Below, piece by piece: positions 899-40,896 of a DNA stretch of 40,896 nucleotides. How positions within the stretch are numbered: position 1 is the stretch's first letter; the number at the start of each line of letters is the position of its first letter. The notes beneath the pieces are model-generated. The model was given only the letters and a program-made list of their open reading frames with translations. It made no database searches and was not told the DNA's origin. The stretch is from NCBI RefSeq assembly GCF_001194135.2, contig NC_068989.1:85657860-85698755 (forward strand), written 5' to 3'. Origin of the DNA: Octopus bimaculoides. Lineage: Eukaryota. The translations under genes and the position numbers were made by a program.

Positions 899-22302
<21,404 letters not shown>

Positions 22303-25930: not shown

Positions 25931-27294
25931 ACATTATTGGTTGTTGTGCAGAATTTTGCAGTGTCATATCACAATTCAAAGTATGTGGTAGCTTTATTTG
26001 TTTCATATAATTACACTAAATTTCTATATTAACTGTAGAAAACTTTGCTATGTCACATGACAAGATGTTAACAGGTTGCTATGATTTATGGAATATTCTG
26101 GCAACACCAAATTAATTGGAACTGCAAGAGCCACTATTTTTCCTGTGTGATCCAATGCATAGGTCATTGTTAGTGGTGTTTAAAATCATTCTTTCTCTTT
26201 GAAATTGGTGTCCAATTCATAGAAGTGAGTAAAGATCTATTAAATTTGATTGGTTGCTTTGGTGAACTCACCAAAGTGAATTAGTACTTTGTTGTATTTA
26301 AAGGTCAACCATCTGTTTCACCCTATCTGCTGCAACTCATTTTAACTCATTTTTCATTTTCATCTGTTAGTGGAAATGAACCTACATTCTAGATCACCCT
26401 CTTCTTATCTCTTTCTCTCTCCTCATATGTATGTATGTGTGTGTGTGTGTTTGTATATGTATGTGTGTGTGTTTGTATATGTACAGATATATGTATGTGT
26501 GTGTGTATATATAGATATGTGTGTGTATATGTATAGATATATATGTGTGTGTGTCATCATCATCATCATCACCATTGTTAACGTTCGCCTTCCATGGGTT
26601 GGACGATTTGACTGAGGACTGGCGAACCAGATGGCTGCACCAGGCTCCAATCTGATCTGGCAGAGTTTCTACAGCTGGATGCCCTTCCTAACGCCAACCA
26701 ATCCGAGAGTGTAGTGGGTACTTTTACATGCCACTGTCACGGGGGCCAGTCAGGTGGTACTGGCAACGACCATGCTCAAAATGGTGTTTTTTACGTGCCA
26801 CCTGCACAGGAGTCAGTCCAGCAGCACTGGCAATGACCTATATTTATATGTATATGTGTGTGTGTGTATATGTATATATACTTTCATTCATATGGCACAT
26901 GTATATCCATGTGTTTGTGTGTCATCATCATTATTATCATTTAACATCCATTTTCCATGCTGGCATGGGTTGGATGGTTTGACCGGGGCTGGTCAGCTGG
27001 AGAGCTACCTGGACTCCATCTCTGTTTTGGCATGGTTTCTATGACTGGATAAACAAAGCTTGAATGTTTAGGGAATAGGAATAATTAAATAGCCCTAAGA
27101 CTTGACCATTTTGTCTCTTAATAAAAGAAGGAATTTTTACTCTCAAAGCAGCTTCTTATTTCAAACTATCAGTTGATTAGTATTGTTATATAATTTTTAC
27201 TGAAACTTTATTGGAATTTTATTGAAATTTCTAACAAAAGAAATTGTAGTGGGGCCTTATTCTGTTGTACTCTTTTCTGTTATTGGTACAAGGT

Positions 27295-30240: not shown

Positions 30241-30519
30241 ATACATTTCACTATTCTTTGTGTGCTTTACCTTCCATCAAGAATAATGCTTGCCAGAGTT
30301 GGCGTTACCTTGGTTTTAAAATACCAATTGATTTTAGACACTGTACCAATGGAAACATTCAACAATCCATCAATTTGCCTTATAACATGAAGCATTTTAA
30401 CTTATTTCCAGCATGGAAAACGAATGTTAAATGATGAGGATGATATCTGCAAAAAAGTAAAACAGAAGGCTATATCATGAAGTGCAAGACATATGTAACA
30501 CATATGAATATATATATAC

Positions 30520-30609
30520 ACACGAGAATAGTTTTGAATTTATTATTGCCAATAGGAAAAAAAATTTAAATAAAAAGTGGTGTCTCCATTATTTTGTCCA
30601 ACCCCTGTA
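30520..30609 (+). mobile_element. Orphan terminus of the same Tc1 family (TIR 30579-30607 plus TA)
   Basis: ggtgtctccattattttgtccaacccctg-ta matches the TIR at 21490 in the same orientation, with different internal sequence. Confidence 0.75.
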
Positions 30610-31084
30610 TACACACACACACACACACAAATATATATACATATACATGTGTGTGTATGCATACATGCATGTATGTATACACATAGACACACACACATGC
30701 ATGCACACACACACACACACACACACACAATCATATCTATCTCACTTTTTCTATCCTGCTCTCTGCTTTGCTAAGAACAACCATCCTAACCCGATCACTG
30801 ACACCTTCTTCTGTTTCCAATACCACCACCACCACCGCTGCTGCCACCACTGCCGTCGCCGCCACCACCACCACTATCACCTCTCTACTAAACTACATCA
30901 CCACATCACTGCTACATCACTTCACCACAAAACCTCTATTACACCACTGTGCCACCTTCCCCTGCCTCTTTCTTCAACCACAGTTACCACTAGCATATCA
31001 CCACCACCACCACTACCACATCCCACTCTGTAGAGGTGTTGGTGGTAGTGGCATTAGTGCAGCTGGTAAGGTCAAATGGCTATC

Positions 31085-33721: not shown

Positions 33722-34519
33722 GTAAGTATTCACCCTTTGTTCATTGGGATCACATAACTGCAGGGGGAAGGACTAGAGCTACCCTAGAAAAGCATCTGTA
33801 AGATATGCATGGTCGTGGTGGGGGATTGTGAGGGTATTTTGAGAGATATATTCAGGGTATGTTGGGATTGTGGTGCTCTTGAGAAGTATATTCAGGATGT
33901 GATGAGGCGGTGGTAACACTGAAAGATATATTCAGAGTGTTTGCAGCTGTGGTAGTGTTGAGGGGTATATTCAGGGTGTACCAGGGTGATGGTACCCTTC
34001 AGATATATATTCAGAGTGTGTACTAAGCTGATGATACTCCTGATTAGGTAAATTCAGATGGTGCTGAGATGGTGGTGACTTTGAGAGGTATATTCAGCAT
34101 GTGCTAGGGTGATGGTACCCATAAGGGGTATGTTCAGGGTGTACTGGTGGGATATTAATAAAATTGACGCATATATTCAGGGTGTTGGGTTGGTGGTACC
34201 CTAGAGAAGTATATCAAACATATAGCAGGGTGGTGGCTGTTGTGATGCTGACGACTGATGATGAAAATTATGATGATGGAGAGGATGAGGAGAATAATGT
34301 TTATGAAAGAAATGATGATGATAATGATGGTGGTTATGATGATGGTGGTGATGATGATGTGATGATGATATTTGTTTTTATGTTTTTTGCAGTATGGAAT
34401 ATCCAAGCTGGTTACTAGTAAGTGTTAAAACTAATTCTAATTATTTATTAATTGTAGTTACTCTCTATTATTCTAATTAATTTTGAATCAAAGGGAACTA
34501 CTGCCACCTGTTTAATATA

Positions 34520-34592
<73 letters not shown>

Positions 34593-36002
34593 GCGCATAC
34601 ATACATACATACATACATATATACACACACACACATATATATATATATATACATATAAAAGTTAATAAAGTATTATTACCATTATTAAAAATAACAATAA
34701 TAATAAAGTGGCCAGCAAGTTTAACCTAAATAGCAAAAAAAGTATACAAATAGATTAAGGTACCGAAATACCAGCTTGCTAGAAATAGAAGTCAAAACTC
34801 CAAGGCCACAAATTTCTCACTATTAAGAAACACGCACGGTGAATGTAGCAAATATAAGAAAAATAGGCCTTGCCTTTGCATAAACCACAGAGCAAGAACA
34901 GATATCTTGGTATCAATTGATTTTGCCTTTTGTTCGTTATTACTTAAGGATCATCAATCAAGTTTATTGTATTCATCTATTTTTCAAAATATTCATTTTA
35001 TTATACTATGCGCGTTTATTCACTTGAATGCCGGTGAGACATTCAAAAGGGAGGAAGTGAAATTTAAAATTTGATAAAGATATCTGTTCTTGCTTTGTGG
35101 TTTAAACAAAGGTAAGGCACCTTGGGCAATTGTCTTCTACTATAGCCTCGGGCCAACCAAAGCCTTGTGAGTGGATTTGGTAGACGGAAACTGAAAGAAG
35201 CCCATCGTATACATATGTGTGTGTTTGTGTTTTGTGTTTGTTCTCCCAACATCACTTGACAACCGATGTTGGTGTATTTATGTCCCCAAAACTTAGCAGT
35301 TTGGCAAAAGAGACTGATAGAATAAGTACTGGGCTTACAAAGAATGAGTCCTGGGGTCGATTTGTTTGACTAAAAGTGGTGCTCCAGCATGGCCACAGTC
35401 AAATAACTGAAACAAATAAAAGAATAAAAGAATATATACATATGTATATGACAGGCTTCTTTCAGTTTCCGTCTACCAAATCCCCTCACAAGGCTTTGGT
35501 CAGCCCGAGGTTATGTAGAAGGCACTTGCCCAAGGTGCCACGCAGTGGAACTGAACTCAGAATCAAGTGGGTGGTAAGCAAGCTACATACCCCACAACCA
35601 TTCCTATATTTACTTATCCATACCTGGTGGTGTTGAATAATATTTCCTCTAAGACTTCTACGTTTCATTTATTTCAGCCCAAAGTGTTATGAAGATGAAC
35701 TTACCTTTGTGAATTTTCATGGAAAGCAAAGGGAATTTAGGAGTGCAAATGGTACTTGTAATAATCTGAAGAACAAGTACTGGGGTGCCGCCTATAATGA
35801 ATATTCACGTCTCATTCCACCGGCTTATCATGACGGTCAGTGAAGAAAGACACTCAAATGTCTCCATTTTTTCCTTTCCTGAATTCTGACCGAATTCTCT
35901 ACTCTCTTCTGCTAACTTTTTTGCTCTCTCTCTCTCTCTCTCTTTCTTCTTCTTCTTCTTCTTCTTCTTCTTCTTCTTCTTCTTCTTCTTCTTCTTCTTC
36001 TT

Positions 36003-36117: not shown

Positions 36118-36516
36118 TCCACCTTAGCGAAGGCAGAGGTATTGTTTTCAGTCACGTTTGTTTGTTTGTTTGTTGGTTCGTGGACAAGACATCTCAAGAA
36201 CTGCTGGATGGATTTGGATGAAACTTTCAGGGATGTTTGGCCTCACGACTGGCACAAACTGATTAGATTTTGGGATCAATTCGGTACCAGACAAGGATTC
36301 TTGATTATTTTCCCTGTTTTTTGTTACTTAATTTTTGAGAGCGGTCAGGTTCATTTTTAGTATTCTCATTTGCGAGAGCAGTTGAGTTTATTTTAGATAT
36401 TCTCATTTTAAAAATCATCTCTTCTTAATCGTTGACAGGACGTTGGTGTTGCCTTGGCGGAGGTTTGCGCTCTCCGAGTGCTCTTGTTATTACTATTATT
36501 ATTATTATTATTATTA

Positions 36517-36566
<50 letters not shown>

Positions 36567-37400
36567 GTTATTATCATTACTTTTATTATTATTTTCATTC
36601 TACCTCTTTACTTTTCAGGTTATGACAAACCAAAAATATATGGAAAGAGTGGAGGATTATTACCAAACGCTCGTGTTGTTGGGTGCAATCTATTTAGCGA
36701 ACCTTTCAACGCAAAATGTCTGTCAAAACTGAGTCTTTTTACTGCATTCTTCTCTCAGGCGATTTCCCATGATTTGTCTGACACAAGTCGACCATCAAGT
36801 AAGTTTTTGTTTAAAGAGGACTTTGAGAGAACATAGTGACAATTTGGTTAAGGTTTGAAGGAAAAATATGTGCTTGAAATCTGAAAACCATTTCTTCTTT
36901 ACATAGTTATTTTAGCTTTAATTTACTGTATTTGATGGCATAAAAGACACAAAGGGTATATTAAATGCACCCCAATGCTAGCAGCGCATATTCAAGATAA
37001 CATGTTTTTCTTTCACTAAAGCATTTAATATAGGCTCAACTTTGTATATAGAACCCCAGGTGATATTTTTGAGTTATTCTTTTTTATAAAAAGTTCATCT
37101 TATGTGCCATCAAATACAATAATCCATTATCGTGATGAATGGTCCAAAATATAAGAGCTAACAAAAGTATTCCAAATGCAGGTGCAGTTTGTTAGTTAAT
37201 TTGTCACATGTATTCTATTTCAAGACAGTTATGATTGTGTCATTGCTACTGTTCACTGAAGTGCATTATTCTAGTTGTCTGTCAATTGCTATTGTTGAAA
37301 ATAAAAATAATCAATATAAACTAAATATGATAATTATCAATCAGATATAATCTTAACAGATGAGATATGATCACTGTACATGAAATATAATTCCTAATAA

Positions 37401-37610: not shown

Positions 37611-40600
37611 TGAGACCAAATATAACTATGACAGATCAAATATACTCACAACCGATCAGATGTGACACAGATCTGTTACAATAAAGAACACTGAAATCCA
37701 TTGGAGATTTTTGATAAAAGATATTTATTTTTATTGAAAACAAAAAAATATTTATGGTACTTAGGAATGACAAATATTGAGATAGTTCAAAGCCCGTGTC
37801 CAGTCTGATGTTTGCCATCTACTGTCTATCAGAAGTGGCTAAAATATGCTGAATATATAGTGGTGGTCTTGCTCAGAAAAAGTGTGCCAAAAAGGAAATT
37901 ACTGTTACATCCAGTTCCATACAAAGTCTTGAATGGTCTGATTTTTTTAATGATGTTGGTAATATTTTAGTAAATCACAATCATATTCTTGAGTTGCTTT
38001 TTGTATTGGATAAAGTGATTTGAGTTCAATTGCTAAATATTCCTGCTACAGAGCAAATGAGATATTGATCGATCAAATAAAACTAATACAGACCAAATAT
38101 AATTACATGAGTATCAAACCCTGAACATTACTGTCTTAAATCCTCAGAATCATAGGATCAGTTATCCTATTTCCATGGTGTATAATGACTAAGAATGCAA
38201 TGTTCCTCCTGTACATGATGTAATTATTAAAATGAAAGATGAAATGACACCACAATAGATCAAATCTAATCACAAGTCTAATAACATAACGGCAGATGAA
38301 ATATTTACATTAAAAAATAACAAACAAACAACAGGGAATTTAATCTGAAATTGAACAAACATTTTTTCAAATTTGTAAAATATGTTTTTACTATTCTTCT
38401 ATGTATTCCACAGATATTGATTGCTGTGGTGGCCCATTGAGGTAAGTGTTCAATTCTTTCTGCATTGCATCTTGTAGCATGGATGTGATTAAGTTTATCC
38501 AGTTGATATTTCTGATGATGACGATGACAACGATGATGGCGACAACAATGACAATGACAACAACGATGGAGAGACACTGAAGATGATTGTTGATGGTAGT
38601 AGTATTAGGATGATGATGTTGAAAATTGTGAAGTTGATTGTGTTGGTGGCAATGGTGATAATATGATGATGATTAGTAAAGTCACTTTGTTGCTGATGAC
38701 AATACTACTGCTGCTTAGCATACAAAGTGAGGTGTATGGCTCTCTCTGGTAGGTATGTTAATTAACCAGACCAAACTGACTATGAATTCATACCAGAGCT
38801 CATCTCTTTCTTGTCAAAGACACTTAACTCTCAAACATGGCTTCCACAGAGAAACAGCAGCATCACAGAAAATACTCAATAACATTTAGTATACATCACT
38901 CTACGTTCAAAGTTCAAATTGTACCAACACCAAACTCATTCGTTTTCCATCTTTGCACTTCATTTTACTTTATTTTATATCATTTTTAAACACTGTTATG
39001 TATATTCTGTATGTTTTAATACTTTTATATATTCGCACTGCATCAATTTTTCTGCAACTGATAATCCAGCATCTCTTTTTAATTTGGACTATTAATAACT
39101 TTTTCACAACCAAGTCTTCACAACACACATTTATTTATTTGTTAGTAACTCATCATGAAGGTAGAAACACTCTTCTTATACATGATTGCAATAATATGAG
39201 AATGCAAACGTTTAAAAATAAATTCAGCACCATATGCTAATATTCTAAAGACCCTTTTTCTCCAAAGAGCAAATGGATAGAGATATCATTACATCCATTG
39301 CAGTGGATGTAAAAAAAAAAAAATTTAAAACTGGTACTCCATTGGTTATGACAATAAAGGTTCTGCTTGTGAAATTAACATGCAAGTGGCTGAGTACTCC
39401 ACAGACATGGATACCCTTAACATAGTTCTCAGGGAGATTCAGTGTGACACAAAATGTGACAAGGCTGGCCCTTTGAATTACAGGTACAATTGGGGTTTTT
39501 TTTTTTTGCCAGCTGAGTGGACTGGGATAATGTGAAATGAAGTGTCTTGCTCAAGGACATAACATGCTGCCAGGAATTGAACTCACAGCCCTATGTCTAT
39601 GAGCTGAATACCCTAACCACTAAAACATGTACCTTCACCAGAGGATACAGTATTCTAGCAGGAAAGGAGAAACAATTAATATTGACATTTTGCAGTTACA
39701 TTTCAAGAGATGGCCTGGCACTGGCATTGAATTTTGTTTTAAGTATTAGCAAATGGCATTAGATTTTGTTTTAGGTATTAGAATAAAGCATTAGATTGTT
39801 TCGACTTTTGCACCTTGATATTATAGTAAAGGGATTGGAAAAATATTTCCAATTTTATAACACAATCATGGCAAATAAACAAAGGTGTGTTGTGAAAAGT
39901 TATTGATTATGTGGTGCCTGTCTGCCAGGAATTTACCAGGAATTGTTATCACATGCCTTCTGTTAATCAAACAAAACAGATCATCTGGCATGGATCTGGG
40001 TCAAGGAATGATAGAAAATTGATGCTGCATCTTTATAATGTTAAAAAAAAAATTATATATATGCATTGTTTTATAGATTTTTAACAATTGTCTTAATTTT
40101 ATGTTTATTTCCAGGAACAAATCAATATGCTTTCCCATAGTTTATAGCAGTCACTGTCACCTGGATAAATGTAGTGGTTACTACTATTCATATTATGGCT
40201 TCCCGAATTACTACCAAAATGGTCGTTATCTTCTTCGTTATCCTTCTCATTATCCACTTCATTATCCAACTCATTATCCACCTCGTTATCCTCTTCATTA
40301 TCCCATTCGTTATCCCCTTCGCTATCCACTTCGTTACCCATTTCATCAACAATCAATTCATATCAGTCAGAAAAACAACCATAACTTAAACTTGCATCTG
40401 AATCAAAATCATCACCACCACCATCACCATGGTGACCATTATCTTGACCTGCACTTTTACAACCAACACTATCCCCATTATTACCCCAGCAAAACCCCTT
40501 ATAATTACCATCTTGGGCCATATGGGAAAAAATTCAGTGAATCTCACAGTCAAACATCACATAGTCACACTCGGGTGTCTCATACTCGCACTCAGGTATC

Positions 40601-40896
40601 TCATACTCATTCACACTTACTGCATCCTTTTGGATTACACAAGCATGTACATTTATTGCACCCTCACTCTCACTTGGCCCATCTCCACACTCACAGTCAC
40701 GCATCACGCAAACATGAGGAGAACTTAGCTTCTGCTCACTTGCACATAACTCATGCTCAATCACATTTAGCACAAGCTCACTCACACTCTTTATATCCTT
40801 ATCGAGGGTTGAGTCCCACTCAAATCCATGCATTGCACCAGCATGTACATTTATTGCACCCTCACTCTCACTTGGCCCATCTCCACACTCACAGTC
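33682..40896 (+). CDS. Secreted animal heme peroxidase-like protein with a His/Tyr/Pro-rich low-complexity region; 3'-partial (about 404 aa visible)
   Basis: join(33682-33721,34393-34417,35678-35835,36619-36798,38414-38441,40115->40896); all GT-AG, phases 1,2,1,1,2 consistent. Translation: [154 protein letters not shown]... This matches the family motifs YRxxDGxCNN, WG, RLLPPxYxDG, LPxARxVS, GQFxDHD and CC..CFPI in order. Confidence 0.9.
33841..34235. repeat. About 40-bp minisatellite, about 10 copies, conserved core TATATTCAG
   Basis: Unit starts at 33841, 33881, 33921, 33960, 34000 and onward. Confidence 0.85.
34393..34417 (+). CDS. Peroxidase-like gene, 25-nt microexon (V)WNIQAGY(Y)
   Basis: gttttttgcag| acceptor, TA|gtaagt donor; supplies exactly the phase 1-to-2 bridge needed and completes a signal peptide ending IQA. 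Confidence 0.75.
34867..35118. mobile_element. MITE-like element with about 49-bp terminal inverted repeats
   Basis: 34867-34916 gccttgcctttgcataaaccacagagcaagaacagatatcttggtatcaa versus the reverse complement of 35071-35118; few mismatches. Confidence 0.75.
35678..35835 (+). CDS. Peroxidase exon PKCYED...[33 protein letters not shown](G)
   Basis: catttatttcag| acceptor, G|gtcagt donor; peroxidase N-terminal motifs; absent from ORF track. Confidence 0.93.
35925..36114. repeat. Compound microsatellite (CT)n(CTT)n(TTA)n spanning a 10-N gap; other long tracts at 13451-13497, 16180-16250, 22800-22845, 23030-23125, 34520-34655, 36490-36580, 37405-37460
   Basis: Seen directly. Confidence 0.95.
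36115..36487 (+). mobile_element. HINE/DINE-1-like non-autonomous Helentron element
   Basis: 5' subterminal repeat acctccacc with partner ggcagaggt, (GTTT)n core, 3' subterminal repeat ttggcggaggt (36454-36464), terminal hairpin gcgctc-tcc-gagtgc; inserted in (TTA)n. Confidence 0.7.
36619..36798 (+). CDS. Peroxidase exon with distal pocket (LPNARVVG...FSQAISHDL)
   Basis: cttttcag| acceptor, A|gtaagt donor; distal Gln (36756), His (36768) and following Asp (36771). Confidence 0.92.
38414..38441 (+). CDS. Peroxidase 28-nt microexon (N)IDCCGGPL(R)
   Basis: gtattccacag| acceptor, AG|gtaagt donor; conserved CC; phase 1 to 2. Confidence 0.82.
40115..40896 (+). CDS. Large exon: NKSICFPI followed by Tyr-rich, (H/R)YPx x9, His7 and His-rich repeats; open to window end
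   Basis: gtttatttccag| acceptor; codons 40116-40895 (260) contain no stop; repeats have periods of 12 and 198 nt (multiples of 3). Confidence 0.85.

Follow-up and report, generated by a model that had tools for sequence, protein, structure and literature searches.

A candidate translated (H/R)YPx repeat in a divergent haem-peroxidase-family gene of Octopus bimaculoides

In the genome of Octopus bimaculoides, a short tandem repeat reads in one of its frames as a regular series of tyrosines and prolines, and the question arises whether this repeat is translated and, if so, to which protein it belongs. It is located on the + strand at 40176-40343 of the window analysed here, by which is meant the whole stretch of 40,896 nucleotides (nt) of contig NC_068989.1 (assembly GCF_001194135.2, forward strand, positions 85,657,860 to 85,698,755). 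On the evidence of the sequence, the repeat is interpreted with moderate confidence as a translated, in-frame 12-nt minisatellite within a large exon of a divergent gene of the animal haem peroxidase family.

The repeat array and its reading frame

The region begins with a cluster of tyrosines at 40176-40235 (+), as read from the translation, the last four residues of which form a degenerate tenth unit, RYLL (40224-40235). Directly after it, nine tandem 12-nt units of the form CRT TAY CCN NYT are found at 40236-40343 (+), each encoding (H/R)YPx, as established by translation and by comparison of columns. A Tyr cluster followed by nine (H/R)-Y-P-x units at 40176-40343 is what the original prediction had claimed, and the description is exact in translation. 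The array was also called by Tandem Repeats Finder (40223-40344, period 12, 10.2 copies, 79% matches, score 111), by which a period of 24 was reported over the same array as well.

Comparison of the nine units displays where the variation is located. Six of the 12 columns (1, 4, 5, 7, 8, and 12) are invariant. Column 2 is either G or A, giving Arg or His, columns 3 and 6 each contain one synonymous C, and column 9, the third base of the Pro codon, occurs in three states. Columns 10 and 11, belonging to the x codon, vary, and the third base of this codon is constant, contrary to what free synonymous drift would predict. The original prediction had regarded the invariance of Y-P as protein-level selection rather than slippage. 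As far as coding is concerned, this claim is favoured by the frame, the exon context, and the period-3 signal described below, while its reliance on the units themselves came out less clearly. When the 17 differences among the units were placed independently, two adjacent codons with positions 1 and 2 untouched were obtained in 0.4% (given frame) to 1.2% (any frame) of trials, whereas the same pattern was obtained in 12-34% of trials when the six variable columns were taken as the unit instead. Columns are perhaps the fairer unit for such a test than single differences, because tandem copies share ancestry. The stronger coding evidence is the sequence context, not the nine units themselves.

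The array is carried by exon C, which occupies 40115-40896 (+) and remains open to the end of the window. Its acceptor, tttatgtttatttccag|G at 40114|40115, scores equal to the other acceptors of the peroxidase-family gene. The exon opens with NKSICFPI, which contains CFPI, a motif conserved among animal haem peroxidases, after which the product passes into low complexity rich in Tyr, His, and Pro. The frame carrying the repeat is open for 273 codons, from 40077 to the end of the window, and a fully open frame, whichever the frame, was observed in only 3 of 5000 dinucleotide shuffles. Across 40077-40896, no in-frame stop is present in the frame of the repeat, compared with 7 and 12 in the other two + frames and typically 5-6 in the shuffles. 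Moreover, the period-3 power, which is 0.3-2 times the spectral mean in the preceding intron, climbs from the acceptor to 7-13 times the mean over 40146-40535 and is near 3 times thereafter until the window ends. For exon C as a whole, period 3 is the top spectral peak, at 21 times the mean. Regarding possible earlier ends of the exon, no GT donor within it scores above 0 before those at 40432 (1.5) and 40596 (CAG|GTATCT, 2.3); three GT sites at 40171-40177, all of phase 1, score -1.7 to -3.9, in comparison with 3.1, 4.7, and 7.8 for the accepted donors of the gene.

Beyond the array, translation and repeat finding show that the same frame continues as a His-rich tract at 40344-40896 (+). His is encoded by 57 of the 260 codons of 40116-40895, and a run of seven is located at 40410-40430. 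The bias towards Tyr, His, and Pro is maintained past the array into the non-repetitive region 40344-40555, where period 3 is also strong. Further on, a 21-nt repeat is present at 40556-40609, followed by a 68-nt duplication (40631-40698 and 40829-40896, 198 nt apart). All six repeat spacings in exon C (12, 24, 6, 21, 147, and 198) are multiples of 3, and Ser, Leu, and Pro are each drawn from several codon families. Stops in all frames, a lack of period 3, and arbitrary periods, by which a non-coding micro- or minisatellite is recognised, are not seen in exon C. An origin of the exon from a dispersed repeat was ruled out, since no second copy exists within the window. The repeat at 40176-40343 is judged to be probably translated, and a coding reading is preferred over that of a non-coding microsatellite, because of the open frame with its CFPI motif, the splice context, the period-3 signal, and the in-frame repeat spacings.

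The peroxidase-family gene and its surroundings

Upstream of exon C, two open reading frames (ORFs) match the Pfam family An_peroxidase. The ORF at 35637-35840 aligns with the first 34 positions of the profile (E 3.8e-9, 36.1 bits), and that at 36429-36833 with positions 30-91 (E 2e-5, 23.7 bits). The former contains exon A, with which the An_peroxidase domain starts, comprising 158 nt at 35678-35835 (+; acceptor atttcag|CC, donor GACG|gtcagt, phase 1). The latter contains exon B, comprising 180 nt at 36619-36798 (+; acceptor ttttcag|GT, donor TCAA|gtaagt, phase 1), in which LPNARVV and the distal-His motif are encoded. In the distal motif, Q-x-x-D-H-D in the family and located here at 36745-36780, FFSQAISHD takes the place of WGQLLDHD in myeloperoxidase, and Gln, the distal His, and the Ca-binding Asp are retained.

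Exon B leaves phase 1 and the acceptor at 40115 demands phase 2. A direct splice from exon B to exon C was ruled out by phase and gives a stop (RTNQYAFP*). The 3.2-kb gap between them was scanned for every AG...GT interval within 36.85-40.09 kb with a length of 1 modulo 3, an open required frame, and acceptable splice scores. Two candidates were obtained, strong splice sites being present in only one of them, a micro-exon of 28 nt at 38414-38441 (+; ttccacag|ATATTGATTGCTGTGGTGGCCCATTGAG|gtaagt) that encodes (N)IDCCGGPL(R) and converts phase 1 to phase 2. When exons A, B, and C are joined without the micro-exon, the An_peroxidase alignment extends to profile position 111 with 77.9 bits. Insertion of the micro-exon raises the score to 87.4 bits, in comparison with 80.1 bits for the control candidate. 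A CC pair before CFPI is usual among invertebrate animal haem peroxidases. The micro-exon was preferred to two alternatives, a weak donor of exon B at 36802|36803 (score -8.4) and an acceptor at 40140|40141 that would bypass CFPI, which were rejected. An exon of this kind is easily missed by gene finders, and the gene would then appear frameshifted.

The resulting four-exon model, consisting of A, B, the micro-exon, and C, is open throughout. Its match to An_peroxidase (E 1e-24, against a curated gathering score of 25 bits as the cut-off) covers profile positions 1-114 of 530 and runs through CFPI. The first ~133 residues from the start of exon A thus correspond to the N-terminal 114 profile positions, ending at CFPI, and their conservation, at about 0.77 bits for each profile position, is typical of the family. 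The N-terminus assigns the predicted product to the animal haem peroxidases (PF03098). The Tyr cluster starts fifteen residues after the end of this match and is followed by the nine (H/R)YPx units and subsequently by the His-rich tract. The window ends at 40896, inside low complexity, and the other 416 profile positions (115-530), which include the catalytic Arg, the haem-linking Glu, and the proximal His, are not represented in it. At the other end of the gene, a candidate first exon of low confidence is located at 34362-34417 (+). Its product resembles a signal peptide, and its donor (TA|gtaagt, phase 2) fits exon A. A microsatellite of (GAT)n type immediately precedes this candidate.

The window consists of animal genomic DNA and contains N runs, fragments of Tc1/mariner type, fragments resembling short interspersed nuclear elements (SINEs), and introns. 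It begins within NDUFS1, the gene for the 75-kDa subunit of complex I, the + strand exons of which are found from 899 to about 18750 and encode iron-sulfur and molybdopterin-oxidoreductase domains of NuoG type. The next gene downstream of it, likewise on the + strand, is that of the peroxidase family. SINE-like repeats are located at about 7400-7640, 11019-11243, 18101-18535, and 26612-26833, and a Tc1/mariner-like transposase helix-turn-helix fragment at 20937-21398 (-). The tail of a retroelement-like ORF at 16781-17200 (+) is fused in frame to an NDUFS1 exon ORF. Within the span of NDUFS1, tandem repeats occur at 1323-1471 (69 bp, 2.2 copies), 12745-12955 (26 bp, 8 copies), and 18240-18418 (65 bp, 2.7 copies). 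Runs of N, representing assembly gaps, are present at ~16340-16660, ~16990, and ~36040; the last of these falls in the intron between exons A and B and is flanked by long (TTC)n and (TAT)n microsatellites.

Searches for relatives and alternative explanations

A number of observations weigh against a translated repeat in a peroxidase-family gene. The invariance of Y-P across the nine units, taken alone, is only suggestive of protein-level selection, and the array by itself is open in all three + frames. Low-complexity DNA yields long ORFs by chance, as can be observed for a control ORF of 190 codons at 30461-31030 (+), which lies in CA/CCA intergenic DNA, reads as HTHTH... and HHHH runs, and has a dominant period of 2, not 3. 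The distal third of exon C (40556-40896) itself has a CA-type look, with a dominant period near 2.1 and a weak period 3. With a length of no less than 782 nt, exon C also far exceeds its neighbours, which measure 158, 180, and 28 nt. In the distal motif, the Asp that forms the ester link to haem in myeloperoxidase is changed to Ser, and WG to FS. The motif is degenerate, and a non-canonical peroxidase, or one without catalytic activity, may be encoded. Furthermore, no family signal is found past profile position 114 in the 382-residue model, where the P..DP and C..F.RS stretches, conserved in most members, are unrecognisable. The searches for relatives point in the same direction. A collection of 5.8 billion protein clusters, which includes eukaryotic nr and UniRef entries, contains no protein with three 5-residue words in common with the peroxidase N-terminus of 135 residues, and neither exon C nor exon A obtained a match in it. 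A HMMER scan of 1.84 billion representatives gave 13 weak matches, none of which was judged homologous, so that no annotated close relative is present in these collections. No relative was found in two metagenome scans either.

The 13 HMMER matches consist of low-complexity tetrapeptide runs, the best being x-(Y/F)-P-(T/S) runs and a RYPS/RYPI run (E 3e-6 to 9e-4), together with one 16-residue match in a Timema protein. In the latter case, the product of 40128-40175 is identical at 10 of 16 positions to FPFSFSRHCQLDLCSG, which is present in six tandem copies in the uncharacterised Timema poppense protein P0009; this match is probably due to chance. Pfam contains no family matching exon C or the antisense ORFs, and the CFPI region by itself had no sequence match in the PDB. 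Nothing specific was found in the literature, either under the motif strings or on peroxidases of cephalopods or molluscs that have Tyr/His-rich regions.

The alternative that survives best, which is regarded as possible though doubtful, is that the repeat is not translated. The locus would then be a relic or a partial duplicate of a peroxidase gene, or exon C would end after ...HCHLDKCS at a weak donor, and the repeat would be an intronic or post-genic minisatellite whose 3n periodicity keeps the frame open by accident. The failure to find a homologue or orthologue in very large protein collections is consistent with such a relic, as are the end of the peroxidase homology at profile position 114 of 530 and the degenerate catalytic motif. 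An early end of exon C is offered by the three phase-1 GT sites at 40171-40177, and an accidental frame by the CA-type distal part with its period near 2, by the chance ORF of 190 codons in other low-complexity DNA of the window, and by an array open in all three + frames. However, those early GT sites score from -1.7 to -3.9, compared with 3.1-7.8 for the other donors of the gene, and the intact state of exons A, B, and the micro-exon, their canonical sites, and their family-typical conservation would be unexpected for an old pseudogene. The same account has to accommodate zero in-frame stops where about 5-6 would be expected, a period-3 signal that starts exactly at the acceptor, and six of six repeat spacings in multiples of 3.

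A further alternative, considered rather unlikely, accepts that the repeat is coding and holds it to be functionally neutral. Here, an in-frame minisatellite expansion would have been tolerated in a surface loop or tail without contributing to cross-linking, adhesion, or condensation, and the apparent conservation of Tyr and Pro would reflect nothing but the youth of the copies. A recent amplification is suggested by the constant third base of the x codon and by variation in only 6 of the 12 columns. The higher-order period of 24 nt is also in keeping with it, and a crude hand count of synonymous against non-synonymous changes over the units gives a ratio near 0.7. In addition, x(Y/F)P(T/S) runs occur in unrelated proteins and a RYPS/RYPI run in an unrelated metagenomic ORF. 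Set against this neutral expansion is the bias towards Tyr, His, and Pro that reaches into the non-repetitive region 40344-40555 with strong period 3, and the mixed codon families look less like one recent expansion than like a composition kept up in the protein.

An assignment of the repeat to another gene or to the opposite strand is very improbable: the antisense strand of 40105-40356 does read as an acidic DNEx run, with ORFs of 83, 52, and 99 residues in one register, but over 40077-40896 the antisense frames contain 6, 16, and 58 stops compared with 0 in the + frame, the antisense ORFs are without a Pfam match, and it is the + frame that continues from the CFPI motif and the acceptor preceding it.

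Possible role of the segment and comparison with known systems

If the repeat is translated as part of the peroxidase-family product, the segment after CFPI comprises at least 240 residues, with 22% His, 11% Tyr, 8% Pro, and very few acidic residues. An AlphaFold2 model of exon C from the single sequence has a mean predicted local distance difference test (pLDDT) score of 43, a value of low confidence, and displays neither a helix nor a strand of any length over the repeat region. The segment may thus be intrinsically disordered, for which low pLDDT is a weak basis. The net charge is estimated as +64 at pH 5 and +11 at pH 8.1, so that the segment would carry a strong positive charge below pH 6 and almost none at the pH of seawater.

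In several invertebrates, secreted proteins of the matrix are joined by di-tyrosine bonds that haem peroxidases form (PMC6947537, PMC3704445). In the GHGxY repeats of squid beak, deprotonation of His and stacking between Tyr residues drive coacervation triggered by pH (PMC11931252). By analogy, a process of several steps can be proposed. The segment would interrupt the catalytic domain just after CFPI or would replace the remainder as a tail, and Pro at every fourth residue would favour an extended chain. Exposed Tyr residues on this Pro-stiffened chain could be oxidised by one electron, either by the haem peroxidase domain to which they are attached or by a partner peroxidase, and the resulting di-tyrosine bonds would fix the protein in the extracellular matrix. 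During this process, the His residues could act as a pH or metal switch for condensation. That the segment is a sticky, cross-linkable tether on a secreted protein of the peroxidase family is put forward tentatively, with low confidence. The original prediction had considered cross-linking through di-tyrosine or 3,4-dihydroxyphenylalanine (DOPA), or cation-pi adhesion. Its di-tyrosine idea gains some backing from the context. A peroxidase route appears more plausible than one by DOPA and tyrosinase, because the predicted repeat is physically joined to the N-terminal part of a haem peroxidase domain, a class that makes di-tyrosine. The most elaborate version, a secreted haem peroxidase with its own Tyr/His-rich, Pro-stiffened substrate module after CFPI, which would cross-link itself into the matrix that it hardens while His controls its condensation, is speculative and quite unlikely. 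If real, such a built-in architecture of enzyme plus substrate would have no described counterpart in the animal haem peroxidase family. In myeloperoxidase, the cleavage site between light and heavy chains is close to the CFPI motif.

The significance of the locus depends on translation. If translated, part of a tyrosine-oxidising enzyme family and an exposed, regular Tyr/His array would be present on one molecule, whereas they are usually on separate ones; arrays of such a kind form cross-links and pH-switched condensates in marine structural proteins. The gene would then be a testable candidate for the way in which extracellular material is hardened or glued in a soft-bodied animal, and would provide a compact (H/R)YPx peptide motif for biomaterials work. 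If not translated, the repeat would be an ordinary low-complexity expansion beside a decaying peroxidase copy.

Among the closest known systems are the x-(Y/F)-P-(T/S) linker runs of large secreted proteins from protists and metagenomes (P0001, P0002, P0011, and P0012) and the RYPS/RYPI run of P0010, which share the 4-residue period and the aromatic-Pro core. They differ from the present array in that the fourth residue of the x-(Y/F)-P-(T/S) runs is Thr or Ser, suggesting O-glycosylated linkers, His is absent, and the flanking domains are unrelated. The likeness is compositional, not one of homology.

In mussel foot protein-1 and plant extensins, Tyr is the cross-linking residue. As in the present segment, Tyr stands beside Pro in an extended, cationic, tandemly repeated chain, and a resemblance to both had been proposed in the original prediction. 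It does not hold for the motifs by which these proteins are defined. The array contains no Lys and no Lys-rich decapeptide, and has a period of 4 rather than the 10 of AKPSYPPTYK in mussel foot protein-1, a repeat that carries DOPA and Hyp. Extensins are characterised by Ser-Pro3-5 blocks and YxY; here there is no Ser-Pro(3-5) block and no SPPP, only one PP (in HYPP), and no YxY inside the array, where Tyr occurs at every fourth residue. Sequence searches yielded no match to either group.

The squid beak proteins DgHBP-1/2/3, with their GHGxY repeats, are similar in consisting of short tandem peptides of His and Tyr with Pro, Leu, or Val, in disorder, which is predicted for the present segment, and in having a charge set by the titration of His. 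Unlike them, the present unit is a tetrapeptide with Pro, lacking GHG and Ala-rich blocks, and is attached to an enzyme domain in the predicted product. Neither GHG nor GHGxY and GAGFA repeats were found in the translation of exon C, and no similarity to DgHBP was detected in the sequence searches with this exon. Gly, Ala, and His account for 8, 9, and 57 of its 260 residues, compared with more than 50% for the three together in DgHBP (PMC11931252). The segment resembles the His-rich beak proteins in residue logic only.

Finally, the N-terminal 114 profile positions are common to the predicted protein and the animal haem peroxidases (PF03098), including myeloperoxidase, lactoperoxidase, peroxidasin, chorion peroxidase, ovoperoxidase, and MLT-7. 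The shared features RxxxGxCNN, WGA, YxDG, LPxAR, Q...HD, CC, and CFPI appear in this order over the four exons. We know of no described animal haem peroxidase with a Tyr/His/Pro segment at the position after CFPI. Unlike in the known members, the family sequence expected there is replaced by the Tyr/His/Pro-rich residues of exon C, and, if translated, a peroxidase-family gene with such a segment immediately after CFPI would be a new form within a known family.

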